Positions 3,134 through 48,335 of a DNA stretch of 64,000 nucleotides are shown piece by piece. A model generated the notes under the pieces. It was not told the DNA's origin. It saw only the letters and a program-made list of their open reading frames with translations, and made no database searches. Position 1 is the first letter of the stretch; each line of letters begins with the position of its first letter. The translations under genes were made by a program, and so were the position numbers. This stretch comes from Cyanophora paradoxa CCMP329 (taxonomy: Eukaryota > Plantae > Glaucophyta): assembly GCA_004431415.1 (NCBI GenBank), contig QPMI01000010.1:248001-312000 (forward strand), read 5' to 3'.

Positions 3134-3238
3134 CCAGGGTAAGTCGGCCGCATCTTCGAGATGTGTGGTAAGTCGGCCGCATCTTTGAGACATCTTAGAA
3201 TTAAAGATGCGGCCAACTCATGCACCCGCGTACCCTGG
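3134..3238. mobile_element. Small (~105 bp) inverted-repeat element
   Basis: Ends CCAGGGTA...TACCCTGG. Internal GGCCGCATCTT (twice, direct) pairs with inverted AAGATGCGGCC. Confidence 0.5.
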
Positions 3239-12200: not shown

Positions 12201-14672
12201 CGAGCTCCTGGTCCGTTAACGTTGCCCTCGCCCTCGCCCTCGCCCTCGGCGCTGTAGCTGGCGGGCTGCGATTGCGACCCTTTACATAATACGATTACGC
12301 CTCGGCAGCTAGGTGTTCGGGCTGTTATATAATTACGCTATAATATATATAATTATGTATACGTAAAAAAATTTACATAATACTACGGTTTAATTACGCC
12401 CCGGCAGGTGTTCGGGCTGTTCGAGGGTCTGGACGCCAAGATCGGGCGCCTCCCCGGGGACACGCAGGGCCTCCTCGCCTCCGTCCTCGAGCGCCTCGAG
12501 GCCGACTCCGACCTCGCCGCCCCGGGTGCCGCTTGAGCTTCGAATTCCCCCACATTTCCACCCAGATCTAGAGCAATCCATCCTGCTCGTTCATCAGACA
12601 AACAAACCAGAATCTGCATCTCTAGATCTAGTAATATACAATCCCTCCTTCTACTTTGAGTCTAATTACAAAATCGAACGGCCCGGCAGCGCTGGCGCTC
12701 ATCGCCGTCGCCCCCGACGGGATCTCGGAGGCGGACCTGCTGCTCGCCGTCTCCGTCGCCGAGCCCGCGCTGGGGCCTGACCCCGGCGGCGAGCCCCGGC
12801 CCGTGCCCCGCCTCCGCTGGTCCCTCCTCGCGAACGGGTCCGCGCGCGGGCGCCCCTTTGATTAATATTTCCGCGCGCCGCGCGGCGGCCCGCGGCCGAC
12901 GCCCGCGCGCAGCATCGCACACCTGCTCCGCCCCGCCAGCGGCTCGGCCGGCCTCCTCTCCTTCTCCCACAGGTCGGCCCTCCTCCTTCGAATTTGTCGC
13001 CCCGCACTCGACCGACCGACGGGGGCGCAGGCAGGTCGCGAGGGCGGTGCGCGCGCGGTACCTCGCGGGCTGCGCGCACGGGCCGGACTGCGAGGCGACG
13101 GCGGCGGGCGACGTCTGCGCCCAGTGCCGGCCGGACCCCGACCCGGGCCAGGCGAAGAACCTCCCCAAGTTCGAGGCGGAATGGGCGGCCAAGGACGGCC
13201 GGCTGCACCAGGCACTCGCCCTGACGGCCCTCATCTCCCCGTCCTACCGCGCCTGCGCGCGGCACCACATCCACAGGAGCGCGCCCTGGCACAAGCCGGC
13301 GGCCACGGCCCCCTACCTCAACGCGGGCGTTGCGCGGCTCGCCTCCTTAACCGCCTTCGCCTTCCCGTGCGGCGCGTCCGGCGAGGGCCGCCGCGAGGGC
13401 CTACTGCGCGGCGTCTGCGCGGCGCTGGCGGCGGCGCCCGCCCTGCGCAAGCTGAACTTCGGGATGCGGGCCGAGGTGAGCGGGCGGGGGGACCTCAACG
13501 TCGGGGCGCGGATGTCCCACTCGAAAGTGCTGTCGAAGGAGGCGGCGGGCAGCGTCGGGCTGCTGCTGCGGCGCGCCCCGCGCCTGGAGGCGCTGATCCT
13601 CGACGACCTCGGGATCGACGCTGCGCGCCTGGCGCCCATCCTCGAGGGCGCGCGGGCCGGCGGCGGCCGCCTCCGGGGCCTCTCCCTCGCCGGCAACCGC
13701 CTCTACTCAGACGCCGCCGCGCCGCTCGCCGAAGCCCTCGCGACCGCGCTCCCGGCCCTCGAGCGGCTCGACCTCTCGGCGAACCGGCCCACGGCCAAGG
13801 GCATGGACACGCTCGCCCCGGCGCTGGCCGCCGCGCCGGCCCTCCGCGCCCTCTACGTCGACTTCGAGTGCTTCGGGGCCGGCTACGACGGCTCCGAGGA
13901 GGACCAAGGGAAGCTCGTGCGGCCCCTCGCGCGGTTCGCGGCGGCCGCCGCCGGCGCGGCCCCCGAGCTGCGCCTCTACTTCGTGGGAGCCTCGCATGTC
14001 TTCAAGCGCCCGGGCTGGCGCGTCCGCACGATGGAGGACGTGATGTTCGGGAAGTGCTGCACGATGGCGGGCGCCGCCCACCTCGTCGCCTCGGGGGGGG
14101 CCGTCCTCCCCTGCCTCGCCTCCCTCGACGCGGTCCGCGCTTCAATGTCAATCGCGCAAGCTTGGCTGAGGCGGCCGCAGCTGAACGCCGGCTCCATGGA
14201 GACGCAGGTCCTGTGGCTGGAGGACCGGCCCAAGGGCCTCGAGGAGTACGGCTCGTCCTTCGGGCGCCTGTACGAGCCGGTGGACCCCGAGGGGGCCCTC
14301 GAGCCCTCCTTCGGGTGCGAGGGCGAGCCCCTCCTGGGCGTCTGGGCGGGCCCCGCCGGCCTCGAGCTGCGGCTCCAGGAGGCCGTCGGCCTGTCCCACC
14401 TCGGCCGCCTCCTTTTCGGGAGCCTCCGGGACCCGAACTCGGGCCTCTGGGTCCTCAAGAGCGCCCCGGGCGTGCCCCCGGCCGCGGCCACGGTTCCCCT
14501 CCCCGCCTGCTGCCTGGTGGGCGCCAACGGCTCCAAGCCGGACGACGCCGGCCAGGCCCGGGCCTCCCTGCTCGAGGGGGGTACCGAGCTGGACCTCACG
14601 TGGGGGCCCGCAGGGGCCCCCGAGGCCTCCCTCGCCCGCGCCCGCCTCCACCGCGTGCTCCCGCGTCCCTAA
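9248..14672 (+). CDS. DUF4062 + NACHT/STAND NTPase + RNI-like LRR protein (NLR-like architecture), with an Ala/Pro-rich N-terminus
   Basis: DUF4062 motifs as in TEP1/NWD1/NPHP3: VRVFVSSTFK|DMHGERD, VDLRWG, CL|DEIRRCRPWFLCLLGARYGW, SVTELEV. Walker A is GRPGSGKTS and Walker B is IAVIIDAVNQ, followed by PLYLRLAVDEL and FSH|QVARAVRARYL. LRRs include LEALILDDLGI, LRGLSLAGNRL and LERLDLSANRP. It ends in TAA at 14670-14672. Confidence 0.85.
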
Positions 14673-16680: not shown

Positions 16681-17010
16681 AGCTGGAAGGGCCAGGAGTC
16701 AGGGTTGGAGCATAGCGTCACAATTCGCCGAACATAATATTAATAAAGCACGTGGCGTTGCCACAACTTGCCAGTTGGCCTAATTGTGTCATGAAATCGC
16801 GGCCGCGGCCGGCTGTGCCCACAACCCGTGCCTAGAGCATGTGGCAGAAACAGCAAGACTGAAATACCATGATGGCAGCTTCAATAAGAGACGAGACTAA
16901 GAATACAGATAAGATAACAGGTTGCGGAGGGGGGCGCGAAGACGACCAATAATAGGGGCGCCGGAAGGCGCAATAGCGCGCGCCCCGCCTCCGCCCTCCC
17001 CTAAGGTGAG

Positions 17011-20000
17011 CTAAGAAGAGCACTGGCTGGTGTACTGCAGGACCTGCTCCCACAGCACGTTCTTCCCGTCGTCCTTGATCTGACGTGGGGCGGAGCCGGC
17101 TCAGAAACGGACAGACGCGTGCGGGCCCAGCGCAGATTCAAAGGCGCCGCGCGGATTCGAACCTGGACGGTGACCGTCTTGAGCTTGGGGTCGAACGCGA
17201 GCTTGGTGTACGTGCGCGCCTCCTGCAGCGTGCCTGCACGCGGCCGCCCGGCGGGCGGTCAGCCGGGGTCTAAGACAGAGTCGGGCGGGCGGGCGCACCC
17301 CAGGTGAAGGGGACGCGGAAGGAGGAGGAGACGGCGGCGCGGTTGGGCGGGGCGGCGGCGGGCCCGACGAGGACCTCCGGAAGGAAGAAGTCGTAGTTCG
17401 CCACCCGGCTCTGCGAACGAAGCGAACGAAGCGAACGTTAGTGGAGAGCAGCGAGTGCGGATCGCGCTCTAGGTCTTCTTCTTGTAGCTTCTATCTATCT
17501 ATCTATCTCTGAATTCTGTAGCGTCTTGTAGGGGGAGAGGGAGGAGAGGGAGGGGGATACAAGCGCCGAGCGGAGGGAGAGGGGGGTACACGCGCGCACC
17601 ATCGTGGAGGTGACGTTTGCGATGCCGGAGAGCTGCACTCCCCCCGAGACGAAGAGCACGCACTTCTTGGCGTCCGTCGCGAGGAACCTGACGAGGTCGC
17701 TGCCCTGGTCGACGGCGTACCCCGGCCAGAACCAGCCGAGCGCGTTGCGGACGTCGACGCCGACGCTGGAGACGTCGACGGTCGGGCCGCCCTGCAGCAC
17801 CACCTGCAGAGAGTAATACACTTATATAAGAAGAACGGAGATCAAAGATAGAAAGATAGATGGGGAACCTTGAAGGTGGCGGTGGATGCCTTGATCTCGG
17901 CCTTGAGCTGCGAGAGCGTGTCCGCGCTCACCAGCTGCCTCGGCGTCCTGTCCCCACGGCCGGCCGCCAGCGTCAGTCTCTCGGTCCGGGTCGGGCGCTC
18001 CGCCGCGCGGCGCGGAGATTTGTTTTTACTCGAAAATTCCTAGCTTAATTAAGCAGTTTTCTGCAATCGGCTCTAGAACTTTGGCCGCACGCGCACCGCT
18101 CGGATCGGAGGTCAACGACGAAGAGGTCAAGCGTGGTGCCCCACGAGAGCTTCCGGAGCGCCTTGCTGCTCGCCATCGGCACCGCCTCCTGCACGGGCGA
18201 GCGGGCCGGGCCGGGTCGCCCCCCGTCAGCTCTCTTCGCGCCAAAGCGGTCGGCTGTGAAGGCGGACCTTCATCGCATCACGGGCCCGGCTCTGCCGCTC
18301 GGCGTCGGTGATGACGGGAGCACCCGCTAGGGCGAGCTGTTGGACTGCAGGGCGATGGGAGGCATAAACGTCGGGCGCAAGCGGTGGGGCGGGGCGGAAA
18401 AGCGCACTGTTCATCGAGGTTTTCGCTGCGAGCGCTGCGCGCGCATTGTGCACGTCAGCTGGTGGCGAGAATCGCGACAACGGGGCGCGTGCGTGCGCAC
18501 CGTTCGGGTCGTAGTACGAGCCGTACTCTTTGTCGGACCACGTCGCGGCGACGGAGGCGGAGTGGAACAGGGCCTGCACGTTCTCGCGCCGGAGCTGTGC
18601 GCTCCACTCGGACCTGAAGTAGGACGGGTTGGCGGTGGTGTTGACGGCCGGGTCCGCGTAGATGGTGTCGCCGGCCAGCAAAAGGAAGTCGAACTTCTCC
18701 TCGGCGGCGCGCTCCAGGACGGTGTCGGGGAACCGCGAGTTGTAGATGGCGCCTACCGCGCCCAGCGTCACGATGCGCTTGGTCGAGTCGGCGTTGCCCA
18801 TCGTGCGGAAGCGAACGATGGCGGAGCGGCCGGTCGACGTGGAGACCCACGCGTTGTACAGGGTGTCGGCCTTGAGGCCCGTCAGCGTGACGGTGAAGAG
18901 CGCGTCCGGCCCGGTCGGCGTCCCGTCGTTGTATGTTAGGTCCGTACTGCCTGAAATGGGGTCCGCAGGACTCCCCCACGTCGTGCCCGAGGCTGCAACA
19001 TAACGGAGAGACAGGCTGCCGGGCCCTCTGGCCCTGGCGACGAACTGCGCCGTCGTGTCGGTGACGTCGCCGACCTGGAGGCCCCACGCGAAGACGTCCT
19101 TGAGAAGGGGCTGGGTGGGTTCGTAGGAGACCGTCGGCTCGGCCCCGCGCGACGGCGCCGGCTCGAGCGGGGCGTCCCCGCCGCGGCGGGCGGCGCGCCC
19201 GGCGGCGGCGATGATGATGATGACGAGGATGAACCAGAGGACGGAGAGGCAGCAGGACCACTTGGCGAGTTTCTTGGCCTTCTCCGAGCGGCTGTTGCGG
19301 TACTTGCAGAAGTTGATGCAGCAGAGGATGCCGCACAGGAATCCGGTGATGAAGAGCAGCTGCGCGTTGGCGGCCTCCTTGCGGATCTTCCGCTCCTCCG
19401 TCTCGTCCTTCACGTGCTCCTCCTCCTCCGTGACCTGACAAAGAAAGAAGAAGTTAGGCGAGCTTCAAAGAGGTAAGGGACGAGCTCACCTTCATGAAGA
19501 CCTCCTCGAGGGTGGTGAGGGAGAGCTGGATGTCGGTGATGTGCATCTGCTCCTTGACCGCCTCGAACCGCTCGAAGAAGTCGGGGAGCTGCGGCGGGCG
19601 CGTAAGACCGGCGCGTGCATCAGCGTAGACGGGGAGGGCGTGGTTGTGGGCACCTCGGGGATCTTCTCGCGGGGTACGCGGAACTGCCAGCAGCCGGGGA
19701 GCACCGCCGCCACCTGCGCCGCGCCGCGCCGCGCCGCGTCGGGATCCCGGGCCGGGCCGACGCTTCCAGACAAGGTCGAAAGAAGGGAGCGTACCTCGGC
19801 GCCGCGGAGCTCGCGCTCGACGAAGGAGCGGACCTCGTCGCCGATCTTGCGGCCCTCCGCCTCCGTCCGCTGCGCGCGCCGAGGACGACGGCAACGTCAG
19901 CCAGGCCACCGCCCGCCCGCCCGCCCGCCCCTTAATTCTGTGGCGTCAGGTCGTGGCGCACGTGCTCGTAGAGGAGGGTCATGCGGTAGCCCGTCCCGAA

Positions 20001-23000
20001 CTTGTTCTTGAGGCGCAGCGACGTCCCCAGCACCGACACGCGCCCCGCCTGCGGGGCCCGACGAGGCCCGGTCAGCCTCGGGGTCCAGCTAGGTCTCTCT
20101 GGCCGGCCGGCTGGGAGCTGCTAGCTTCTTCTAGGTCCAGCTAGCTAGTTAGATCCAGCCGGCGGGCGGGCGGGCGGGCGGGCCTTCATGATGCCGATGC
20201 GGTCGCCGAGGATGTCGGCCTCCTCCATCGAGTGCGTCGTCAGCACGATCACGCGGTCCCTGTGGCGGAGAGTGAGTGGGGCGGGCGGGCGGGGCGGGGC
20301 GGGGCGGAGAGGGTGAGGCGGGGAGAGAGGGGCGGGCGGGCGGGCGCACCGCTTGACCTTCTCGATGAGGTTCCAGACCTGCCGCCGCGACACGGGGTCC
20401 ATCCCCGTCGTCGGCTGCGCGCAGAGCACAGAGTCAGAACAAGAACGACATCGAAGAACGACGGGCGCGCCTCGTCGAGGAAGACGATGCCCGGGTTGCC
20501 GATGAGGGCGATGGCGACCGAGAGGCGGCGCCGCATGCCCCCCGAGTATGCCCCCGCGGGCACGTTGCCCGACGAGGTCAGCTCGACGTCCTTGAGGCGC
20601 TCCTCGACCTCCTCCTCGATCCGGTTCCGCGGCACGCCCTGCGGGGGCGGGCCGGGTCAGCCGCAGAGAATCGCGGAGAATCGTAGGGTGGGATGGCTCG
20701 GCTCGGCTTGGCTTCGAAGCCCGAGCCGAGCCGGCCCGGCCCTAGCTAGCTCGACGAAGACTTAGGCGCACCTTGAAGCCGGCGTAGATGCGGAGGTGGT
20801 CGCGCCCGCTCAGGTCGTTCCAGAGGATGTCGTGCTGCGGGCACACGCCCATGATCTGCGGGGGCGCGGAAGCAAGCAAGGGCGTGAGAAAGCAAGCGGG
20901 CGACGAAAGCAGCGAGAGGCGGAGCGCGCCTTGCGGATCTTGTCCATGTCCTTGATGATGGAGTGCCCGAAGATAGTCGCATCGCCCACGGTCGGCTTGA
21001 AGAGGCCCGTGAGCATGCTGCGGATAAATAAGATCAGCGGTGGAATCAATCGGGATCGATCGAATCGGCTGCCTCACTTGAAGGTGGTGGTCTTGCCGGC
21101 GCCGTTGTGGCCGAGCAGGCAGAAGAGCTTGCCCTCCTCCATCGTGAGCCAGGTGCCCTTGACGGCGACGAACTCGGTCGTCGGGTCCGCGATCAGGCCC
21201 AGCGTCCGCTTCATGTACCTGAGTTCGAGAGAAAGGTCAGATCGGATCGGATACGATCTGATCTGACCTGATCCGATCGCGCACGTCTTTCGCAGGTTCA
21301 TAATCTTGACGGCGGTGTGCGGGGGCGCCTGGTTGCTGCGCAGCATCTGCTCCTCGTTGCGGATGTCCTCGTCCATGTCGGCGCGCTGCTCGTTCGGGAC
21401 GTTAGGGGGGTACGCTGCGTCGTTCAGGGGGTACGCGCGCACGTCCTCGGGGGACATGAAGTCGGTCTGGTCGATGTGCTCCGTGTGGTCCTCCTTGCCC
21501 GTCCAGTACGAGGGGTACAGGAAGTAGAACGGACCCTTCGTCTGCCCGTAGTGCGCTGCGGTTCGGGAGTTCAGAATCGAACGGAGCGGTTAGTAACCGA
21601 CGGCAGTTAGTAACTGACAGGGGATGACGTTGTCGAGGTAGAGGGCGAGGACGAGGTACAGGAAGAAGTCCAGGATGAGCCACTGGTACGTGTTGTTCAT
21701 GGACCAGTTGTTGTCCGAGGCCGTTACCTTCGCGTCCATTCGCTCGGCCCAGCGCAGGCCGACGTCGGACTGCTTGGAGGAGACGTCCCCCAGGTCCTTG
21801 AGGCCCTTGCCCAGAAGGCACATCGGGAGCAGCGCGAAGGCGCGCCCGATGGCGAGCGAGACGGCGTCGTTGTAGATCTGCTGCGCCAGCGACTGCAGGA
21901 TGATGCCCACCACGAAGATGACGAAGCCTGTTCGTCCAAACAAACGAACGACAGAAGTCAAACAACAACGCCGCGGAGAGAGTAGTAGAAGGGCTCGTTA
22001 CCCAGCGAGGCGGCTGTGGACGCCTTGGAGATGACCGTCGAGACGAAGAAGGCGAGGGAAACCATGGCGAGGCCGAAGAGGAAGAAGAGGAAGAAGTACG
22101 TCGGGAAGTCGTTCTTGAGGAAGAACCCGAACTGGAAGATGGCCCCGGACACGATGATGATCAGGCCCGTCAGCCTGCGCGAAATCGTTCGGGATTCGCG
22201 GATCGAATCTGGATGAAATCTTTTCTTGCGCACGTGTTCCAGGCGAGGTTCGTGATACCCCACGTGAGCCAGTACGCGGAATCCTTAAGGCCCATCTGGC
22301 GCATGCCCTCGCGAAGCTTCAACTCCTGCTCCATCACAATCTGCAGCGGACGGGCGGCGGCCCGGGTCGGACACTGCGCGCGCGCGCGCCCCCGAGAAGC
22401 GGCCCCGCGCGAGATCGAACCTGGGAGATCTGGATCACGAAGTTGAACATGAGCGCGCCGAAGATGAAGACGGGGCCGTACAGGGCCACGGCTGCGGGGG
22501 TACGGGTTGGGATCGGCGGGGACGGGGGTACGGAGTTTTGCGGGGCGCACCGCTCAGGGAGAGCAGCTCGCGGTGCGGGTACTCGACCTTCGTCACCTCG
22601 AGGGTGGTATCCTGCGACCGGGGCGGGTTGGGCGAGGGGTACGATGCGAGGCAAAGCTTTCACTTGGGGCCGGGGCGCGGCGCACCAGCATGCCGGTCGC
22701 CTCGCAGGCCGCCTGGTCGAGCTTTGCATCCATGCAGCGCGCCTGGAAGCTCACTGCGCCGCCGCCGCCGCCGCCGCGTCGGCGCGGGCGCGCCGCGGGG
22801 CACGGGGCGGGGGGCGGGGCGCACGGATCTCGCGCTCAACGGCCAGCTGGAGGGGAATGGCGTACGCCTCGACGACTCGGATCGGGCGGCCGCGGCGGTA
22901 GATCTGCGTCTGGTTGTACTGTGGTGCGGGGCGGGGCGAGTCAGGCCGGGCAGTCAGGCGGGCGTAGGGGCGAGCGAGCGAGCGAGCGAGCCTGCAGCGA

Positions 23001-23815
23001 GTAGGAGATCTGGAGCGGCGCCGACCGGGGGTCCTTCTCGTTCGCGTGGACGATGTCAAAGACGACGGCTCCGGCGGTCGAGTTGGGGTTCTGCGGCGAG
23101 GCGGCTCGGGCGCGTGCCCCCCGCGCGGGCGGCGCGGCGCGGCGCGGGCCGCGGATGGCGCACCGCCAGAAGGAACGTGTCGATTTGCGCGGCGGAGTCG
23201 AAGGCCTTCACCTCGGACTCTGGGATGTTGTTCCGTATGCGGATTTGATCTACGAGCAGCTTCGCCGCCCAGTCGTCGGACGGAGCCCACGCGACTGTGA
23301 TGCACGAGGTCGCCCGCGCGTTGGGAATGCAGCGCGTGAGCGTCGACGGCATCACCGTCTCCTTCCCCTTCGTCACTGCGCAGCGGGGGCGGCTGAGCTA
23401 AGAAAGGAACGCGAAAGGAACGGAGGCGCCCGCGTGCGCACCGACGCTGGTTGCAGGCCCCAGCACGGCATTCTGCTTCAGCGCAAACTGGAGGAGGAAG
23501 ATCTGCGTGCGGGGCGGTGCGCCTTAGAACGCGTGAAGCGGCAACGAGAGGCGGCGGGCGCGGCGCGCACGGCAAGCACGAAGATGAAGGGTGCGATAAG
23601 CTGAATGATGGTGCTCTTCTTGTTCCGCCTCTGCGCCGCGGTCTTTCAGGCCCCGACGAGCGAGGGCACGCGCAGGACGAACCGTGAGCGACCAGTTCTT
23701 GCTGCGCCGCGGCAAGAAGGGGTCAGAATCTGCTTGCTGAGAGGACGGTGCGGGCCACGCACTACAGCAGGATCTCGCACTGCCGCACGAAGCCGCGGAA
23801 CCCGTCGAGTCCCAT
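17011..23815 (-). CDS. ABCA-family half-transporter (plant ABCA2/ATH1-like) fused C-terminally to a membrane anchor and a degenerate PhoD-like phosphatase domain
   Basis: N-terminus MGLDGFRGFVRQCEILLYKNWSLTRRNKKSTIIQLIAPFIF. TMD motifs IVMEQELKLREGMRQMGL and LYLVLALYLDNVIP. NBD motifs [41 protein letters not shown]|PTTGMDP, LTTHSMEEADILGDRI and LTTLEEVFMK. The GT-AG intron ~19490-19436 joins in frame to VTEEEEHVKDETEE..., then PhoD motifs (FAWGLQVGDVT, FLLLAGDTIYAD, LDLFVVDLRSER, ASTATFKVV). It ends in TAG at 17013-17011. Confidence 0.88.
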
Positions 23816-24596
23816 GATGCAGCGGGGCAGTCGCGGCTAGCGGGCTAGCCCGGTGTAAGACTAAGCTATCGGTCGCCGCACTCGCTAGGGTGGAGCTGCG
23901 CTGGACCCTGCTGCGTGCCGCCGGTGCCGGCTTTCTCGGGCCGGGCTCACTTGCTGCGCTCAAGGGCGAGCTGCGCGTGCGCTCCCTAGAAGCTCCCAGA
24001 GTCAACCCCCTTAGAAACGCCAAATGAAAGAAGGCCGGCGCCCTCTGTGCTCCGCGCGCCTGCTGTACGCGCCTGTCGACGCCCCCCCCCCCCTGTTGAC
24101 GAGCGACTCGAAGCTGTCGTGACCGACGTGAAATTATATCAATCATACTTTCTTAGATAAAGTTAGTGTATATACATGACAAAAAAACGTCTGCTGTCGC
24201 GTGATTGGCGGAGTTTTTGTTGTCCGTGTACGCCCCCGCCAGACCGGACCGACGCTAGCGCTGGTCTCTTGTTACGCTTTCTCTGTGAAGTTCGGAGCGA
24301 AGTTCGCAGGAAGCCCATCGCTGCCCAAGCGCCGCGCGCAGCGCGCGGAGCTACGCGCACGGTGAGACCAGACGACTCAGACTAGGCAGCAAAGCGTGTT
24401 CGAGCCCCCAGAGCGACTTCGTCCTGTGTGGGTCGGAGCGCGTGGGAGTGAGCAGCGCGATACGCTGGCTCACCAAGAGCTAAGCGTGTTTAAGGAGCAC
24501 GAAGCCCAGAGCGTTGTGGTCTTCTCTGAGGAGAACTCCCAGCAGCAGCCGGCCGAGCAGTGGGGTGGCCGTGAGTACAGCAGCGGCGCGACCGGC
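23816..24596. promoter_or_regulatory. Probable bidirectional promoter/5'UTR region of the two ABCA genes
   Basis: 780 bp between divergent ATGs, with an AT-rich core at ~24130-24190 (TATATA) and an inverted CCAAT (GATTGG) near 24203. Confidence 0.5.
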
Positions 24597-27500
24597 ATGT
24601 CAACGATGCCGGGACAGCGAGTTCAATCATATCCCAACGGGGGGCAGGCGCGCGCGCGCCCGCCGCCTCGGCCGGTCGCATTTTCGATCCGCGAATAGCT
24701 TATCGACCCCCGCGTGCGCGCGCAGGCGGTCGACATGAACGGCCACTACGGGGCAACCCCTGCAGTCGTTATGACTGCTCAGGTTCGCGCGAATCTGCTT
24801 CTCTGCCGCCCAACTATTTCGCCCCCTTCTGCACGTGGCCCGACGCTTCCGCGCAGCCGCACCATGCGCCGCAGGGGATGCACCAGCCTCTCCAAGTCCT
24901 CTGTGAGGCTTTCCCGCTCTGCCGGGTCCTTCTCGGCAGGCCCTGACCTTCACCGGCAGCTGTGACCCCGCCCGACGACGCGGGGCGCTGGGCCGACGTA
25001 AAGGTGCGGTCCCGAATCTTTCAACGCCACCGAAGCGATGCGCAACGCCCGCTCACGCCTCCTGGCTACCAGGCGTTCAAGCCGGACGGCAAGTTCCGCT
25101 TCAAGGATCAATTCATGGCGCTCGCGCGGAAGAGCGCGACGTACCAGGTCCGCGGCTCGTATTCGTCTCTTTAGTTTCCTTTTCGGCGGCTTTCTGACCC
25201 GGGGCGCGCTCCGCAGATGCGCCAGTACAAGTGCGGCCTGCGCCCCTCCCGTCTCTTTCGTTTCAGCTCCGCTCGCTCCTCCGCGCCCGCCGCTGACGCT
25301 CGCTCCTCCGCGTCGGTCGTGCTCAGGACGAACTGCTGCCAGATCTTCACGCCCTTCGTCCTGGTGCGCCCCGCGGGCGAACGGGCCCGCCTTCAGCGGG
25401 CCGGGCGCTCACGCGGGCCGCCACGCCGTCGCAGATTCTCGCGCTCTTCATCCTGCAAGTAATCGTGTCGAGCATCGTCACCAGCATCCGCGGGAAGGAG
25501 TCGCCAGCAATCCCGCGCCCTCCCCTTTCTCTCCCGTTCCTCACGTGCGCCCGCCCCGCCCCGCCCCGGCCCGCCGCCCGCTTGCGCGCCCGCCCGGCGG
25601 CCCGACTAAGCTCACCCCGCAGACAACACGAGGAGGACGCAAGCCCGGGGTGTACCCCGGGGCCCCGCATCATCAACGAGAAGGACGGGACTTTCCTGTG
25701 CGCACGCGCCCGCTCGCCCCGCCGCCCGTTCCGCCCCGTCCCTCCCCGCCGACACGGCCGCGCAGGTTTGCGAACGAAGACACGGCGGCCGCCGCCGCCT
25801 TTGGAGCCGTACCCGCAACGAAGTCCTGGGCCTGCGCAGCCATCAACGCTACCGGGTTCCCGGGGGTACGCGCGCGCGGGCCGCCCGCCCTCTGCCCACC
25901 TCCAGCCCCGCAGCCCCGCCCCTCACCTTCGAACTCAGATCGGGAACGCGCTCGAAATGACCGCGTCGTACTCCGGCGTGCTCGGCGCCATGACGCTGAA
26001 CGCCTGCGACATGCTGGCGCGTGTATCCCCCCCTCCCCTCCCCTCCCCTCCGCGTCCTCTAACGGCCGCGGGCGGGCGCAGACGTACAAGGGCGAAGTCA
26101 TCTTCCAGCAGGCGCAGCGCCTCTCCCTGTGCCGGCAGGTCCCGACGTACAACGTCCCCAAGCTCGAGACGGTCCGCCCCGCCCCCTACCTTTCTTCTTC
26201 TTTCCTTCGTTCTGAAGCCCCTTTCTTCTTCTTCTTCCCCCCCGCAGGTCCCGAGCCAGGCCGAGATGGAGAACCGCATCCTGAACGACTTCCCCCGGGT
26301 CTACGCCGGGGGGTACGTTTTCAAGGAGCTCCGCCCCGCCGAGCGCCGCTACCGCCTCGCCGTCCTCTTCAACGAGGCGCGTGAACCGTCCCCCGCCCCG
26401 CACCCCCGCCCCCCGCACCCCGCCCCTCGCCTAACGGGCCCTTCGCCCTACGCGCAGACGATCTCCCAGGCCCGGGACATGCCGCTCCTGCTCAACTTGA
26501 TCACGACGGCCATCGCCCAGGTCCGCCCCCCCTCTCTCTCTCTCTCGAACGAAGCGAAGCTTCGCCTCGCCTCGCTTCGCTTCGTTCGGTTCGCGGCTAT
26601 GCAGCTGACTCCGCCCGCTTCCCGCGCCGCCCCGCCCGCCCGCGCAGAGCCTGCTCCGGCCCGACCCCGCCTTTCGCTTCCAGTACCCCGCCCCCGACAC
26701 CCTCCCCCAGCTCCCGCAGCCCCGCGGCCGCACCCTCAGTGCGCCCCTCCCGCCCCCTCCTCCGCGGCGGGCGCGCGCCCAGCACCCCCGGCTCTAACAG
26801 CGCGCGCGCCCCGCCAGTCGGGACGAAGGACTACCCCTCGAACCCGACGCCCAACGAGTTCGACCTCGTCTCCCTCATCGGACGTCAGCCCACCCATCCC
26901 TCCCGCCCTGATCTGATCCGATCCGATCTGACCCGCCCCGCCCCCGCACAGCCTTCATCTACATCTACATCTTCCAGCTGATGTTCCCCGTGGCCCTCGG
27001 CGGCATCGTCTACGAGAAGGAGCAGCGCCTCCGCGAGGTTATGAAGATGGTCCGGCCCCAGCTCACCCCTTAGCTCCCCCGCCTGAGATGCAGAGTCCCC
27101 CGGAGCTAACTAGAAGCCAATAGAAGCAGAGCCCGCGAAGCAGAGTGTAGAGAGCGAGCGGAGCTAATAGAAGCTAACAGAAGCAGAGCCCGCCCCTGCC
27201 CCCTAAGCCCCCGCCTAAGAGGTCGTGAAGATGGTCCGCCCCCAGCTCACCCCTTAGCTCCCCCGCCTGAGATGCAGAGTCCCCCGGAGCTAACTAGAAG
27301 CCAATAGAAGCAGAGCCCGCGAAGCAGAGTGTAGAGAGCGAGCGGAGCTAATAGAAGCTAACAGAAGCAGAGCCCGCCCCCGCCCCCTAAGCCCCCGCCT
27401 AAGAGGTCGCGAAGATGGTCCGGGCCCGTCCCGCCCCTGCCCCCTTAGCCCCCGCCTAAGAGGTCGTGAAGATGGTCCGGGCTCGTCCCGGCCCGCTCTC

Positions 27501-29676
27501 GGCCCCGCCCCGCCCGAGCTCTCCTTTCGCCTACGCTAAGCTTTCCCCCGCGCAGATGGGCCTGAAGACGTTCGTGTACTGGGTCGTGACGTACCTCTTC
27601 TACTACGTCATCTACATCGCCGCCATGCTCTTCATGATCGGTGCGTCCTCTCCGCGCGGCCCCCTCCGCTCCACTCCGCCCCTCCGCCCTTCTTGACGCC
27701 TCCGCTCCGGGGCCCAGCCGTCGCGTGCGCGTGCGGCTTCCGCTTCTTCCTCGTCAACTCGTTCGGGACGTACTTCATCATGCTCCTCATCTTCGGGCAC
27801 ACGATGGTCGGCCCGGCCCACCCGATCCCGTCCCCTCCCATATGTATCCGATCGCATCCCATCCCATATGCATCCCATCCAACCCTATCCTCTCTCCCGA
27901 CCCTCCCCTTCTCTCCTCTGACGCCCCTGCTCCCCCCCCTCCCCCCCTCTCCCCCGCAGGTCTCGGCGGCGTTCTTCCTGTCGACGTTCTTCACGAACGC
28001 GCAGACGGCGACCGTGGGGGGGTACGTCTACATCATCCTCTCCGGCATCATCGCCTCCCAGGTCCCCGCCCCCCTCCTTTTCCGCCCCCCTCCTTTTCCC
28101 TCCAGAGGCTCCAGAGGCTAGAGCTAGCTTAGAGCGAGCTGAGCGAGCTTGTGGCTAGTGCCCTCCACCGCCTCGTTCACCTTAATCTTCTCCGGCATCT
28201 TCTCCCCACTCCCCGCCCGCCTCCCCGCTCGCCCGCTCGCTCGCTCGAGTTTAGAGCTGCCGCGCCCGCTGCCGAGCTTAGAGCTGCCGCTTAAATCCGC
28301 GCCCCCGGCGTTGTTCCGCACTCTCGGCGTTGTTGTTCCCGCGGCTAAGCTTCGGGTCGGGTCGTGCGCGCAGGTCATAGACCAGTACCTGACCAGCGAC
28401 ACGACGAGCGACGGCTCCCTCTTCGGCATCCAGGTCCGAATCCACGAGAATCAAATTTCGTTCCGAAACGGATTTCTCTACGAAACTCGCGCAAACAAAA
28501 CAGAAATTCGAGTAATAATGTTGAATCGCGCAATAAGATCCAAAATAATCCATTCCTCAACGTTTCTTCTCACGAGTATTCGCACGGAACAGATCGTGCC
28601 GTCGTTCGCGCTCTTCCGGGGCATCCGCATCCTCTCGGACAACGTGGCCTTCGGCTGGGGCGGCGTCCAGATGGCCGACGTCAACCACAAGGAGGTCCGC
28701 CGCGGCTCTTCCAAACATTCCAAACAATCGCCGCGAGGTCTAGCAATTCTAAACATGCTATTCCGGGATCTTTGAAGTCAGCAGCACAAATTATATACTC
28801 TGCTCCTTCCTCCTTCCTCCCCCTCCCCGGGCAGTGTTGTGGTGTGGCGAGGCATATGGTAGAGGGATAAATAAGGTCTGCAGGTCCAAGAGAAGATGCT
28901 ATTGCAATGTGTAGATATATATGATGGCTCTAAATCATCGCCTTCCTCCTCCTCTTCGCCTTCCTCCTTCCTCATCATCGCCTCGGCCCCCTCCCTCCCT
29001 CAGGTCCGCCTGGGCGAGGTGTACGGCTTCCTCATCGTCGAGTGGATCGTGTTCCTTCTTGCCGCCATGTGAGTAAGAGGCGCAACAAAGCGTAGCCTAG
29101 CGGAGCGGAGCTGAGCTCTGACGCTCGTGCCCGCAGCTACTGCGAGCAGGTGGTGCCGGACGGCATCGGCATCAAGAAGCACCCCCTCTTCCTCTTCCAG
29201 AAGGAGACCTACGTCAAGAAGAAGCGGACGGACCGGGACCGCGACGAGGCGCACCGCCACGCCAAGGCGGTCGTGGAGGGCGAGCCCGAGGACGTCGCCA
29301 TGGAGCGCGCGCGCGTGCTCAAGGACCCCAGGTCCGCGTACCCCCCACTCCTCGCCCGCCTGAGTTGCCGCGCCCGCTGCCTTCTGATTGATGCCCTCTC
29401 CAGCATCGCGGTCCGCGCGATCGACCTGGAGAAGGTGTACCCGGCGAGCGGGGAGGTCAAGGCGAAGACGGCCGTCCACTGCCTCACCCTGGGGGTCCAG
29501 GTCCGTCTTTGCGCGCCGCGCGCTCTCCGGGACGGCTAGAGGGGACACCACACCGCGGCCTAGCCTAGTGCTCTCCACTCCACCCGCGGCCTTTTCACCT
29601 TCACATCAAATCAAATCAAATCTCGTCCGTCGTCCACTGCCTCACCCTGGGGGTCCAGCACGGGGAGTGCTTCGGG

Positions 29677-29715
<39 letters not shown>

Positions 29716-32375
29716 AAGTGCGTGCCCGGGGGCTCCGCCGTGCATCCGATAACTAAATCCGGACGTTTTAATTGCTGATAGCTATCTGATTTCAAAATAA
29801 TTGAAGGAGTTCCACAAGTATCCTCTAATACATTCGGCTTCTTGATCACGTTAGTTTATCTGATTAGGGGATCCCATCGCGCCGCTGACCCTACCCTACG
29901 CCTACTCCATCCCGCCCCGCGCCTCTGACCTCGCCTCCCCCCGCCTCGTCTCTGACCTCGCCCCGCCTCTGACCCGCGCCGCCCCGCCGCGCCGCGCAGC
30001 ATGCTGTGCGGGTTCCACATGCCGACGCACGGGACGGCGGTGATCAACGGCATGGACGTCCTTCACGACGTCGACGACATCCACGCGGTCAATCCTCTAT
30101 CTTCTTCTTCTTAGCTTTCGTCGCACGCATCTTCTTCTTAGCTTCTTAGCGCAGGTGATGGGCGTGTGCCCGCAGCACGACCTGCTGTGGGAGAACCTCA
30201 CCGGCCGCGAGCACCTCCGCTTCTACGGCCGCCTCAAGGCGCGCCCCCGCCCCCTCCCTCTCCAACTTCTTGTCGTCCTCTAACTTCGGCGTGCAGGGCC
30301 TGCGGGGGAAGCTGCTGGAGGACTCCATCACGTACCGCCTCGGGCAGGTGAGGGCCCCGCGAGCGGCGCACGCCGCAGAGCAAGAGCGGCGACGGCCGCG
30401 GCCTGGATCGCCCGGGATCCGATCCGATGCGATCTGACATTCCTTCCCCCCTCCCCTCCTCAGGTGAGCCTGCTGGAGGCGCAGAACAAGGCGGCGGGGG
30501 CCTTCTCGGGCGGCATGAAGCGGCGCCTCTCGGTGGCCATCGCGCTCATGGGCAACCCCGACGTCGTCCTCCTCGACGAGGTTCGTATTATGTTATTGAT
30601 TCATTCTTTGTTTTGTTCTTTGTTTGGTATATATTCTTTGTCTTTCGGTGGGGGCTTCGGTGTCGTTTAGGGGGGGCTTCGGTGTCGCGTCTACTTTTTA
30701 AAGAGCTCTTAAAAGACAACCCCGACGCCCTTGAGAGCTCCGAGATTTATTCATGGAAGAAGTCTTCAAAGCCCTCTTCTTCGCTCTGACGCGTTCCCCC
30801 CTCTCTCGAGCAGCCGTCGACGGGGCTGGACCCGGCCTCGCGCCGCTCGCTCTGGGACGTCATCAACGAGTACAAGAAGAGCTGCGCCATGCTCCTCACC
30901 ACCCAGTGCGCCCCTTCCGCCCCGCACGGCCGCCCGGCCCCGCCCCGCCGAGCAGCCTAGTTGTTTCCGGCCGTTTCCAGCTGCTAGTCGAAGCCCCGAG
31001 CCGCCCAAGCTAATCTGAGCTTAGCTCTGAGCTCCTAAGCTGCTTCGCGCTCGCTCTGAGCCGCCCCGTCTCGCCCCGCCCCGCCCCGCCCCGCCCCTAC
31101 AAGTCGATGGAGGAGCCGTGACTACGAGTAACCTTCCTAGTCTAATCTAGTTTAACCTTTCTAATCGAATCGAATCGAATCGAATCAAATCGAATCTTTC
31201 TAATCTAACCTCTCTAATCGCAGCTCTATGGAGGAGGCGGACGTGCTCTGCGACCGCCTCGGCATCTTCTCGTCGGGGCGCCTCCGCTGCATCGGCAACG
31301 CGGCGGACCTGAAGCGGCGCTTCGGCTCGGGCTTCAAGCTCACGACGACGTGCCCCGTCCAGCACGAGGCCGCCTGCCACGAGTGCGCGAAGCTTCCGTG
31401 GCCGACGTGGCGTTTTAAAGGAGCTGTTAAAGAACGAGCCGCCTCTTCTCCACGCCTGCACGCCTGCGGGCGAGCGGGGCCGCCCCGTCTAAAGCGGTCT
31501 AGAGGTCTCAATGAGCACTTGAGGAAGAACGAGCCACAATCACACCGCCGACTAGTTCTTCGCGCTCTAAACTCGACTGGGCCGCCCCGCGCGACTCTGC
31601 TTCTCGAAGCTTTCGTGGCTGACTTGCGCGCCCGCGCGCCCGCCCGCGCCGCAGCTTCGTGATGAAGCTGGTTCCCCAGGCCCAGTTCCTCAACGCCCTC
31701 GCCGGCACCCGCAACTACGAGGCGCGCCCCGCGCCCCCGCCCCACGCCCCCTTTAGGAAACGAACGAGGGACTATAGTATTTAGGATTTAGGACTGTAGA
31801 AACGAGGGATCTAGGATGTAGGCACCCCCAACTAGGAGGCGCGCCCGCCCCGCCCCGCCCCGCCCCGCGCCCCCTCGAAGAAAGAATGACAGAGAGAGAG
31901 CTCGAGCCGGCCCGCCCGCCCCCTCTGACCGCTCCGCCCTCGCCCTCGCCCTCCCCCGCCGCCCTCGAAAAAAGACGTAAAGAGAGCTCGAGCCCGCCCC
32001 CGCCCCCTCTGATCTGACCGCCCGCCCTTTCTCCCTCCCGCGCGCGCGCAGCTGCCGAAGGGGTCGTTCAGCCTGCGGGACCTCTTCGCGGCCTTCGAGG
32101 CGAACAAGGAGGGCCTCAAGATCACCGACTGGGCCATCATGGACACCAGTGCGCCCTGTTGGAAGATTAGAACTATAGATATTAGGATCTAGGATTAAAG
32201 GATTTAGGGTTAAAGATTTAGAACTATCGAACTATAGAACGACTGGGCCATCGTGGACACCAGTGAGCGTTGTAGGGCGCCTAACTTATGCCCGGCCTTC
32301 TTCTCCTTCTTCCTCTGAGCTCGCTTCGCAGCGCTTGAGGAGGTGTTCCTCCGCATCGCCGACATCCAGGACTGA
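24597..32375 (+). CDS. ABCA-family half-transporter (plant ABCA7/ATH6-like), ~28 introns
   Basis: [31 protein letters not shown]|[66 protein letters not shown]|[15 protein letters not shown]|[14 protein letters not shown] and DWAIMDT|[10 protein letters not shown]. It ends in TGA at 32373-32375. Confidence 0.92.
27035..27480 (+). repeat. Intronic tandem duplication (two 184-bp units plus a 57-bp partial unit), each beginning with a copy of the exon end and donor
   Basis: GAGGT(T/C)(A/G)(T/C)GAAGATGGTCCG at 27035, 27219, 27403 and 27460. The units are near-identical. Confidence 0.9.
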
Positions 32376-32792
32376 TCGACATGATTGGAGAGGGGGGACC
32401 CGGGCCACCCGGCGCCCGGCGCCCGGCGTCCGGCGTCCGACCTGGGAGGATGGAGGAAGGGAGGGAGAGGAGGGGATGGCACCTGAGGCGTTTTCGGTGC
32501 TCTTTATTACGCCGCGCGCCCCGTAGCTATAGCGGGCCGGCCATATTTCGAGTAAATTAGTCGCCGGGTCGAACGAGCAGTGTTATCTATCTTTTGTTTG
32601 TAACGCGCGCGCTCGCTCGCGTTCTCCGAGTGTCAGGATGTTTGACTCAGTAATGCGTACATCTGATTTTGTATTCGCAGCATTTCACAGCTGTCCATAT
32701 TACAAATACACTCTAGCATGCGCAGCACTTAAGCTTCTCCACACGAACGAGCACACGGGGGAGGGGCGAGGCGCGGAGCTCGAGGGAGGGAG

Positions 32793-33315: not shown

Positions 33316-36300
33316 AGTAAGTGGACCCGCGCGAGTATCTTTCTGCGCAGCTGCCATAGGACCCGCATGACCGACTCCGTTCTAAGCTACACACAGCAAG
33401 ACGTCGACCTCATTTCATAGTATGCAGCTATAGCCTATAGTTAACGTTGTATTGGTGGCGAAATATGCATCAATATTTGACCAGCGTTCTTGCAAAAACA
33501 ATTTACATATCGAGAGAAATAGACCGTCGGACTCCGACAAGTCTCCCAGCTGCAGGGGGTTTTACTTTAATCTCTAGCTAGTCAAATGCCTAGGTGTATC
33601 GTGGTGGTGCCGACAGCTGCAGTATCATGATCAGTCGTGTCCACCTTTCCAAGAGTGTTCGGGCGTGGACGCGGTCGAGCTCTCTTCTTGTGGGCGAACC
33701 GCAAAAGCCCCGCAATCACAAGGACCGCCGCCTGCGCAGAGGAAATTCAGCACGTCGGGTTTGTACACGTGGGCGCCGCCATGCCCACGGGGCCGGGCCT
33801 GGCGCGCACCACTCCGAGGCCGACGCCGAGACCAATTGCGAGATCGGAGCCTCTGCTAGTGCCTTCATTGCCGGCCGTCGATTCCGAAGCATGGCCCTGC
33901 TGCCACGAGGACAGCAGTGATTCATGTGCGGACCACTCCACATACTGAATTGGTCCCCCGCTTAGAGCATCAGCAGTGTTCACGCTCATGCTTACGCTGG
34001 GGAGCCGAGGCGCACGGGGTTGACGAAAAGCGTCTCGCCATCTGGCTGAAGCATGGAGAGGCCATATGGGATGCCGGTGGTGAAGAGGAGAGCGCGCGAG
34101 CTGGAACAGCGGGCTGGAGGGAGGCCAGGAAGCTCTACGACCGTCCCGCGATCGCGACTCAATGAGATTGGGGCGTTTCTCACGAGCAAGAAACGGAGTT
34201 TACGCACGAAAGCAAAGTCCGGCATCGCACAGACGCGCCCCCGTGATGGCAAACGTGCAGACGGGGCCCGCTTGCGCGTCGAACGTGCCAACAAGAATCT
34301 GTGACGAGCACGGGCTCTATCAGAGAATGATCCGAATTCAAAACCCTGGCGCGAGCGCATGCATGGTCCATAATTACCGGATTAGGAACATCAGAAAAGA
34401 CGCCAGGCCAGGCGACCTCTACGGATGGTGGTGCCCCGATACTCGACCGTGAGGGGGCTGGTACCCGCACAAGCGCGCGGCTGTCCAGCGGTGCACAGGC
34501 ACGCAGACTACCATTCATCGTGCAGGAGAGGTTTGCAACGTTCACGATCCCAGCTACGCGCGCGCATTGGGTCGGCAGCGGTGTTAGCATAATTTTCATT
34601 GGATTTCGAAACCGTAGCGAATCCGAACCTCGTGCCCAGTAGATGGCCTGATCATGATCATGACAAAGATTAGAAACACTTCCGACAGATGACAGCGAAT
34701 CTGACGCACGTTTTGGATGACGGTTGTCGTGGATCCGTCGGATATGGCAAGCGCGTAGTTCTGCCCCAGCGAAAGCGCGAGCAGGGCACGCCCGCTTTTT
34801 GCACGCACAGGTGCGAATCCGAAAGGGCTTGCGGGTACATCTGTACATACGTGCATTCGATCGGAATCTTGATGATCAGAGAGTGTGACCGAATTAAAAT
34901 GAACACATTAGTTTGCACCAATGCAGAGAGAGGAGGACGGCTTCGCGGTGGTGGGATCGAAGGGCGGGGAGAGACGAGCGGTGAGGTTCATTGCCTCAGA
35001 GAGGAGCGCACCGTCGCTCGCAAACTCTCCGACTCGGACCCAGGGCAAGGCCACATACTGGCCTTCAAAGCAAGCCGTCGTTGCGTGCGACTGTCTTGCG
35101 GACATCGAGGCTATCGGAACCTCGGCAGCGAATGCGCCGTCTCCGGTGGGCTTGGCGACTCGGGCCAGCTCAGGTGCGCACTTCGCAGCTGCGCGGCGGC
35201 AAATTAGCACTTCAGGTGCGCACAAGTACTTTAAAATATAACCGGGCGCGAGCGGGGAATGGGGTTTGGCTGCGCACCGCTGGTCGTGATGGTGAGTGTA
35301 GTGCTTCGTGCACCCGAACCCAAACGGTTTCTACAGAGAACGGCGATAGAGTACGGTGCTCCCGTCTCGAGTCCGTCCACCGTTAGGGTGATGGGGAACT
35401 CGGTGCCGCCGGCCGGCGGGGCAGACGATGCGAGCGTCCTAAGGTTCTCTACGCCAGCGCTGCTTGTAGATATTTGCACTATCGAGCACTGCGTGTGCGG
35501 TTGCGGAACATGCGTCGGGCAGGGCTTTCGCGATCGAAGCACGTGCACGTGCTCGTGCGCCAAAATATATCTAATGCAAACGCAGACGCGCACAGTTGTG
35601 ATCGGGATGGGGGCTCCGGAGTAGGCGTCGATTGCAGTGCTCACGGGTTGTAAGAATGAGACGGAAATAGAGCGGAAGGTGACGCCTGTAACCCGCACGC
35701 TGGTTGGTGCGGTCAGACCTGACCCAACCCACAGCCTCACGTCAGTCAGCTGCCGTCAGTGTACATGTTGCGTATGCCAATGATCCTTTACGTGCGGCTT
35801 AATTAACGCAAGGCTCTGGCGTGCACCAACGTTGGGTACGGGGAAACTCATGGCGTTCCTGATCGTCTGCATTTCCCCCGTCCGCGCATCCTTGAGTGTC
35901 ATGTCGAAATCTGCGAAGTTTTCGAAATCAGCGATGGAGCTCTAGAGCTAGATAACCCTTCGGGAGCGCGACGGGATAGCGACGCCCACTGTGCCCCTGG
36001 GGTAGTAAAGTACTATTGCAAGGTGCCGGGATAGTACAACCGACGCCTTTGAGAGTAAACTACAAGGTGCCGGGATAGCGACGCCCACTGGGCCCCCGAT
36101 AGGGGGACGCATTGAAACAAACAGGAGTTCCCCCGATAGGGGGTCGCTTCCTGAGTTCTAGAGCTAGGGCAGTAGTTACAATCGAGTGCACCTTGCGAAG
36201 TACCGGACGGGATCGGAAAAGGCGATCCCTGCGCGTACGGCAGGTCGCCTGATGCGTTCTCCACCAAGCGAAGTTGGCTGAAGGAGGTAGGCAGCTCCTT

Positions 36301-44650: not shown

Positions 44651-44838
44651 TACCGTGTAATACTTAATTACCGCGCTGACATAACTACTGCGCTACCATA
44701 TGCATATTACTGCGCTCAAAATTTTTAGAACGCAGTAATTTGGTAGCGCAGTATTAGCCCCTTTGCTAACAAATTTTTGGATTTTCGAGGCCGATGGAAC
44801 GCAGTAATTTGGTAGCGCAGTAGCGCAGTAATTTGGTG
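44651..44838. mobile_element. Truncated copy of a Tc1/mariner-pogo-type MITE
   Basis: Left TIR TACCGTGTAATACTTAATTA plus internal CGCAGTAATTTGGTAGCGCAGTA repeats, colinear with 46041-46230. The right TIR is absent. Confidence 0.8.
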
Positions 44839-46808: not shown

Positions 46809-48335
46809 ATTTGGTTTTGGTGAATTTCCGCCGTTTACTTAAGTTACCGGCCACCAGTGATGGTATTCCGAATTCGAATTTCTCCAAAAAACAGTGGCAC
46901 AGCCTCAGCCGCACAGGTAATATCATAGTATATTGACAGTACTCTAGTACAGTAACCGTCGACGTCGACGCCGTGACGTCGCCGTCTCGCCCGGCCGCGG
47001 TAAGTCCGGTAACCCTAAGCGTGACTCAAGCGCATGCATCCGATGATCATGCATATGCATGCGACTGAGTACTAGTCACGTCCGACCGTCGGACGGTCCT
47101 TTGTGACTCTCTATTATAGTAAATTGCAAAATTTTGCAATTGTGAGTAAATCGTCTCTGAATCAGTAAGTTAGTAACGTGACCTTCGAATTCAGCGGTCC
47201 GTCCGACGGTCAAGTCGTCAATCGTTTACAACTTTACCTTCCGGCCGAGTCCGACCGTCGGACATTCGACTTTAATTTATATATTTTAAACTTGATTATG
47301 GCATCATTGCCAAAAACAAAGTTGGCATCCGCAGCCGTGATATCGATGTCGGATGACTCGGATCATCGGATGCACGGCGTCTACGAAGCTACGTATACCC
47401 GGACTCTATAGCTACCGGTACCGTAGTACTGCCACCGTACTGGTCCGCCGGGCCGGTAGATCTGATGACTCATGATCCGCGCCGATCATCGGATCTCATT
47501 ATCACTGATCGATCAGTCACTGAGTCATCTGACTCAGTGACGGAGCTCCCGGTCCGGGTCCCTGTCACTCCCTGATCATGACACTCCCTGTTACTCCCTG
47601 ATTCCCGGAGTCGACGTCCGTACGGTACGGTCCGGAGTTTCAAATTCGAATTCGGTGCCAGCCTGGGAGGCCGAACCGTCAGTTTCTCCCGAGAACTCCC
47701 GAGTTTCGGTGCCAGGCACTGCCAGCCTGGGAGGTCGAACCGTCAGGTTAACGTTTCAAGAACTCTGCTCAGCGGCTACCCTACCCCTCCTATGCGAGAG
47801 CGAACCGTTGAACCGTTTTTTGTTTCGGCGGCCCGGCGGCGCCGGCGCCGGGGCCGGCGGATCGATATCATCGCGATCAATATCGGATCCTCAGTGATTC
47901 CTCACAACAACTTGCAAGTTGGCAAGTTCAGTGCCCTTCACTGATGAGTCATGGACTCATGGCATCATTGATCTGCCAATGTTTTACCCCGTTAACGTTT
48001 TTTGTTCTGAAAATCGCAGGATTCGCAGCTTGGCCCAACTAGTACTTGGCAACTTGGCAAGTTGGGGACCCGGGGATCCGATGATCCTCCGACCGTCGGA
48101 CCATCATGGCCCAGGCCAGTCTGGCAGTGGCATGCATGCGCATCGAATGCCATCGATACTCGGATATCTGGAGTCTCAGAGTCTGCCAATGCCATTGAAT
48201 GATGCCGCCTGCCGCTGAGCTGCCTCAGCGCTAGCCTAGTAGCCTGCCTGCCTGAGCTGAGTGAGCTCCGAGGCTTGATCACCCGAGTCGATGCGCGTGT
48301 ATGTGGCGGCATTGTGGCCGCAGTGGCGGCCCTGG

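Follow-up and report, generated by a model that had tools for sequence, protein, structure and literature searches.

Introduction

Where new spliceosomal introns come from has long been asked, and few single cases bear on it cleanly. The locus described here raises the question directly. In a window of 64 kb of Cyanophora DNA (the whole stretch that was analysed), one intron of a transporter gene ends in 28 nt that repeat, letter for letter, the end of the preceding exon. The first-pass annotation, made from the letters alone, read this repeat as intron gain or acceptor replacement, caught in the act. Was the intron created by an insertion that duplicated a piece of exon, or did an older intron receive a new 3' end? 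Break repair is one of seven mechanisms proposed for intron gain (PMC3443670), and a search of the literature on intron gain in Cyanophora found no paper. The evidence assembled here speaks for gain through an insertion that duplicated 28 nt of its target, a reading to which we give a probability of about 60%.

The host gene and the removal of the intron

The window contains two diverged ABCA half-transporter genes in head-to-head arrangement, one at ~17000-24000 on the minus strand and the other at ~24500-32700 on the plus strand. When the exons of the host gene were searched singly, the exon at 30464-30577 matched Pfam ABC_tran with 28.5 bits (cut-off 25) and the exon at 30155-30238 matched only ABCA1/3/4/7 chains in PDB (E ~1e-12). 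The Walker A exon of the paralogue also scored above the ABC_tran cut-off. As judged from these matches of its predicted protein, the host gene belongs to the ABCA subfamily of ABC transporters.

The removal of the intron is documented by two transcript-like contigs of 3.2 kb, which come from two different studies (runs X15 and X17) and have all introns removed across the locus. In both, 29472 is joined to 29631, skipping 158 nt; the 28 letters of the repeat fit on either side of this joint, GT..AG appears at the cut shifted by +28, and within the 28-nt ambiguity 29501/29658 is the sole GT..AG option. A joint that skips the 158 nt occurs in no DNA contig aligned to the locus. The spliced frame runs through GVQ| into the next exon without a shift, and eleven RNA joints of the gene, taken together, give one open frame. 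If retained, the 158 nt (not a multiple of 3) would shift the frame and bring stops into it. Being removed from RNA at GT..AG, the intron belongs to the spliceosomal (U2-type) class. The first-pass annotation had predicted an opening GT at 29501, closure at the CAG of the second copy and a GVQ| junction, and had named RNA as the place to look for that junction; the transcript contigs of both studies agree with it throughout and confirm the acceptor at 29658.

The signals at the 3' end of the intron lie within the repeated piece. Copy 2 contains a CTCAC whose A stands 15 nt before the next exon, and the neighbouring introns carry CTGAC, CTAAC, CTCAC or CTGAT (CTNAY) 15-29 nt before their acceptors. 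To judge by motif and position, copy 2 probably supplies the branch site as well as the acceptor. The earlier suggestion that the copy provides both a CTCAC branch-like motif and the AG thus holds at the level of the motif, with a spacing like that of the branch-like motifs in neighbouring introns. No AG occurs in the last 89 nt of the intron before the acceptor, nor in the last 63 nt of the insert that precedes copy 2.

At the other end, the intron opens with GTCCG, the donor motif in about half of the 12 introns of the gene. Five of these donors read GTCCG and a sixth reads GTCCC (27051, 28062, 28434, 28695, 29332 and 29501), an unusual consensus compared with GTAAG or GTGAG. The same transcript contigs also back a GC..AG intron of 58 nt at 30239-30296. 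The features of the locus are collected in Table 1.

Table 1. Features of the locus, in positions of the 64-kb window
Feature	Positions	Strand	Remarks
Spliceosomal intron, 158 nt, phase 0, GT..AG	29501..29658	+	Joint in transcript contigs; only canonical choice
Exon of ABCA-type transporter gene	29404..29500	+	RNA-supported joints at both ends; in frame with neighbouring exons; last 28 nt are copy 1
Repeat copy 1, exonic	29473..29500	+	Exact, 28/28; ends in CAG, then GT; read as left target-site duplication
Insert, 130 nt	29501..29630	+	Donor GTCCGT at its start, second GTCCGT at its end (29624-29629); no similarity nearby
Multi-copy part of insert	29500..29549	+	Other contigs match from the donor site on, with 2-4 mismatches and different upstream sequence
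Repeat copy 2, intronic	29631..29658	+	Exact, 28/28; read as right target-site duplication; CTCAC at 29641-29645, acceptor CAG at 29656-29658
Next exon, Walker A motif of nucleotide-binding domain	29659..29717	+	Spliced frame
Junction copies in same gene, intron 27051-27555	27036..27494	+	Last 15 nt of upstream exon plus donor site, three further copies
Homologous site in ABCA paralogue	21077..21187	-	Coding continuous, no intron; Pfam ABC_tran E 1.5e-5 (Walker A exon)

The repeat and its genomic reality

The direct repeat between the exon end and the intron end is exact over 28 of 28 positions and cannot be extended (C against T on the left, G against C on the right). When up to three mismatches were allowed, the 28-mer had two matches in the window, which are the two known copies. 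The perfect copy described by the first-pass annotation is therefore there, in just these two places. As a control for chance likeness at splice boundaries, each 5' boundary of the gene's 12 RNA-supported introns was paired with every other 3' boundary. These 132 mismatched pairs had on average 2.7 and at most 9 letters in common, against 28 for the intron studied here. The true boundary pairs of the other introns of the gene have 0-9 letters in common, the same as the mismatched-pair null; the idea of older duplications around these introns was dropped on that ground.

That the structure is an artefact of assembly or a chance repeat is hardly credible: short-read contigs do break inside the intron, but an independent DNA run from 2012 (X1) has both copies with their intron-side flanks, the RNA skips exactly 158 nt, and 100 dinucleotide-preserving shuffles gave no match to the 28-mer. 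One X1 contig (27500-29540) holds copy 1 and 40 nt of the intron, another (29520-31834) holds 111 nt of the intron, copy 2 and the exon, and neither differs from the assembly at any position. In thirteen DNA-type runs, 99% of the sampled words of 28900-30400 are present. The breaks of the short-read contigs at 29520-29540 are due to the multi-copy nature of 29500-29549. Run X14, with a share of sampled words of 0.93, shows no differences in 3.4 kb of flank, but its long contigs leave out 29541-29630 and one contig stops exactly at 29631, the first base of copy 2; the run may contain a variant here, or copy 2 may have another sequence on its left.

Identity at 28 of 28 positions limits the divergence of the intronic copy to less than 0.107 substitutions per site (95%), and this bound on its age is looser still if splicing constrains copy 2. 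The intron can thus be called young, as the first-pass annotation had it, but not necessarily caught in the act: a bound of ~0.1 substitutions per site is too wide for that, and copy 2 now carries splicing signals.

The 130-nt insert

Between the two copies lie 130 nt of G+C-rich sequence. Local alignment of this insert with the adjacent 130 or 400 nt on each side, on both strands, gave scores within the range of shuffles, and searches for other copies in the 64-kb window (exact, with up to three mismatches, and by sensitive blastn) returned only short G+C-rich chance matches. Near its 3' end the insert contains (TCAAA)x4.4 at 29601-29622, which bears out the (TCAAA)n filler mentioned in the first-pass annotation, and 10 nt separate this stretch from copy 2. 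Rfam gave no match up to E = 10 and the intron folds no better than its shuffles (z = +1.26), which speaks against a retroposed known small RNA or structured element. A scan of 29000-30200 reported no inverted repeats involving the ends of the insert.

The first 50 nt or so are of a different kind. Some 4-8 other contigs, all short, have 39-48 nt in common with the insert and then diverge, and two of them agree with each other, up to the donor G, in an upstream flank unlike the one here. Since the likeness to these other copies starts at the donor site, it hints at an intron-derived or mobile donor, which might have carried its own 5' splice site and co-opted the 3' site from the target duplication.

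Short direct repeats elsewhere in the window

The repeat at the intron does not stand alone. Exact direct repeats of 16-33 nt, spaced 22-241 nt apart (e.g. 3138-3185, 12311-12421, 36019-36078 and 44728-44822), number 18 in the window and none in five shuffles, and several of them contain AG|GT-like junctions. On sequence grounds, these repeats suggest that small insertions with long duplications arise by a general process. Four repeat pairs compatible with GT..AG (7453-7714, 12313-12407, 36023-36066 and 47670-47733) were not counted, as no convincing coding frame runs across them.

Within the host gene, the intron at 27051-27555 has three additional copies of its own exon/donor junction, at ~27220, 27404 and 27461. 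They lie in tandem repeats of 184 nt (x2.1, 97% identical) and 57 nt (x2.1), and are apparently unused decoy donors. A transcript contig has a loose end at 27555.

The homologous site in other ABCA genes

In the ABCA paralogue on the opposite strand, coding sequence runs uninterrupted through the site of the intron, and AV stands 19 residues from the G of GxNGAGK in both genes. Downstream, the two genes have introns at two shared positions, one following Walker A and one preceding the MGVCPQHD exon. The paralogue has no introns matching 27807-27959 and 29501-29658, and has one of its own at ~21219-21283, 21 codons upstream. Intron turnover between the paralogues is thus high, which makes the comparison a weak guide to the ancestral state.

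A metagenome scan with the 64-aa exon as query recovered five distant eukaryotic ABCA loci (L001-L005). The site is uninterrupted in all 8 of their nucleotide-binding domains, which has little bearing on ancestry as the loci are intron-poor throughout. These loci are A+T-rich (35-54% GC), at least three of them have two nucleotide-binding domains on the contig, a motif GIKKHPLF after the last membrane helix is common to them, and the stretches that match the exon are almost contiguous. A word search with the 129-aa genomic ORF at 29150-29536 for other assemblies of the locus gave no match.

Proposed gain by insertion and its alternatives

Two traits of an intron made by insertion at a staggered break are found here: a direct repeat on either side (28 letters, against at most 9 in the boundary control) and an insert unrelated to its flanks. 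From them we infer the following course of events. An intron-less ABCA exon would have been broken by nicks 28 nt apart, about 130 nt of foreign DNA would have been set between the ends, and fill-in would have doubled the 28 nt on both sides. The insert would have brought the donor GTCCG, and the duplicated exon end the CAG together with a CTCAC ~15 nt upstream. With a donor in the insert and these signals in the duplicated piece, the spliceosome would remove the insert plus the right-hand copy and restore the original message exactly; that removal and that restoration are what the transcripts record.

Three lines of evidence together favour gain: the insert is unrelated to the flanks, the site is free of introns in the paralogue and in the distant homologues, and duplications of 16-33 nt are common in the window. 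The direction of the change is weakly supported by sequence comparison, which covers one old paralogue and five distant, intron-poor homologues that lack the intron at this site. Several considerations count against gain. At 28 nt, the duplication exceeds in length those that have been published for new introns. That a random piece of filler should start with the best donor motif of the gene is improbable, barring selection or an intron-derived donor. The signs of multi-copy sequence extend over ~50 nt of the insert and rest on short contigs. Finally, the paralogue is an old one, with some but not all of its intron positions common to both genes.

The other half of the first-pass proposal, replacement of the acceptor, survives as an unlikely but serious alternative. 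Here the intron would be older, and a break near its 3' end would have been repaired from exon 2 on a template of spliced mRNA or cDNA. Synthesis would have placed a copy of exon 1's final 28 nt beside exon 2, and the new end would then have been joined to what remained of the intron. The result would be the natural footprint of an aborted intron loss of the RNA-templated, reverse-transcriptase type, a thought that we advance tentatively. RNA-templated repair of breaks is established in yeast; for an acceptor rebuilt in this way we know of no precedent. Such a repair predicts, with no extra assumptions, that the copy consists of the last bases of the exon, that it abuts exactly on exon 2 and that the donor site is mature and follows the consensus. 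It would also fit the acceptor region, in which a run of five G precedes the CAG, whereas the gene's other introns end in pyrimidine-rich sequence. Against it, the paralogue and the distant homologues have no intron at the site, the GTCCGT with which the insert both begins and ends is left unexplained, and insertion-type duplications of similar length are common in the window and account for the same structure more simply.

The likeness of the insert to sequence elsewhere and its repeated hexamer bear on a special case of gain that we consider distinctly doubtful, in which target-primed reverse transcription would have delivered either a copy of an Introner-like family or a reverse-transcribed lariat loop (one turn plus 6 nt). 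Such delivery would explain the long duplication, and a mobile or lariat copy would account for matches to other genomic copies that begin at the donor G. The occurrence of GTCCGT at each end of the insert has a probability of ~3e-4 at fixed places, and the full hexamer is unique among the 18 repeat pairs of the window; a prefix that equals the suffix is not a general signature of the local repeats, only a 5-nt match at 9880 (in a tandem array) being comparable. For a lariat in particular, the sequence …ATCTC, which precedes the second GTCCGT, would look like the surroundings of a branch site, provided that the branch A had been skipped. On the other side, the other genomic copies match for 39-48 nt only and then diverge, the 64-kb window has no second copy, the insert shows neither a poly(A) tail nor, in the inverted-repeat scan, inverted terminal repeats, and one hexamer is thin evidence. 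If true, a lariat-loop insert would be direct evidence for the transposition of introns via excised intron RNA.

A tandem duplication of a local segment that later diverged (Rogers model) has next to nothing left in its favour: tandem duplications do span a donor site in the same gene (27035-27494), but the 130 nt have no similarity above shuffles to 130 or 400 nt of either flank on either strand while the 28 nt are perfect, and divergence cannot have erased the one and spared the other.

Meaning and comparison with known systems

Gain by insertion, if it is what happened here, is an event of a kind already known and no new kind of mechanism. What is notable is the long and perfect duplication together with confirmation from RNA. 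The whole anatomy can be read in one place, with the donor in the insert and a branch-like motif and the acceptor in the duplicated piece of exon. Taken with the similar junction duplications in the same gene, the long duplication suggests that an active insertion process is at work in Cyanophora, lengthening introns and occasionally creating one. Were this true, Cyanophora would be a usable system for studying intron birth.

Among known routes, insertions of LINEs, SINEs and processed copies by target-primed reverse transcription have variable and often long target duplications. The present structure resembles them in its long duplication and in a stretch of simple repeat near the 3' end of the insert. 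It differs in having no poly(A), no recognisable retroelement and the 10-nt gap between that stretch and the duplication. In the Rogers model, a tandem duplication of an exon segment containing AGGT yields the intron (PMC3443670), and there, as here, a splice site is drawn from exon sequence; the difference is that in the model the whole intron is duplicated exon, whereas here only 28 nt are. Introns from organelle DNA captured during break repair are represented by Bigelowiella and Daphnia cases that PMC3443670 cites; they share with the locus a one-step birth of an intron from filler DNA at a break, and they differ in that the present insert is G+C-rich.

Some families of Introners bring a 5' splice site of their own, and a target duplication of 3-9 bp furnishes the 3' site (PMC9860276). 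The division of labour is the same as at our locus, in Chrysochromulina among others (PMC9860276): the GT comes from the insert, the AG from the duplicated target, and the length of the mRNA is unchanged. Introners are recognised by target duplications of 3-9 bp and/or terminal inverted repeats and have many near-identical family copies, which form introns in unrelated genes. Here, the duplication is 28 nt, only ~50 nt are multi-copy and no inverted repeat that involves the insert ends was reported in 29000-30200.

In Daphnia pulex, new introns flanked by repeats of 4-12 bp have been ascribed to staggered double-strand breaks and their repair (Li et al. 2009; PMC4202315). The 28-nt duplication described here is more than twice the longest of these, and in Daphnia the gain is proven by intron-less alleles in populations. 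In other respects the two cases agree: both have the signature of a flanking direct repeat, an inserted sequence that in Daphnia is mostly of unknown origin, and a message restored by splicing (PMC4202315).
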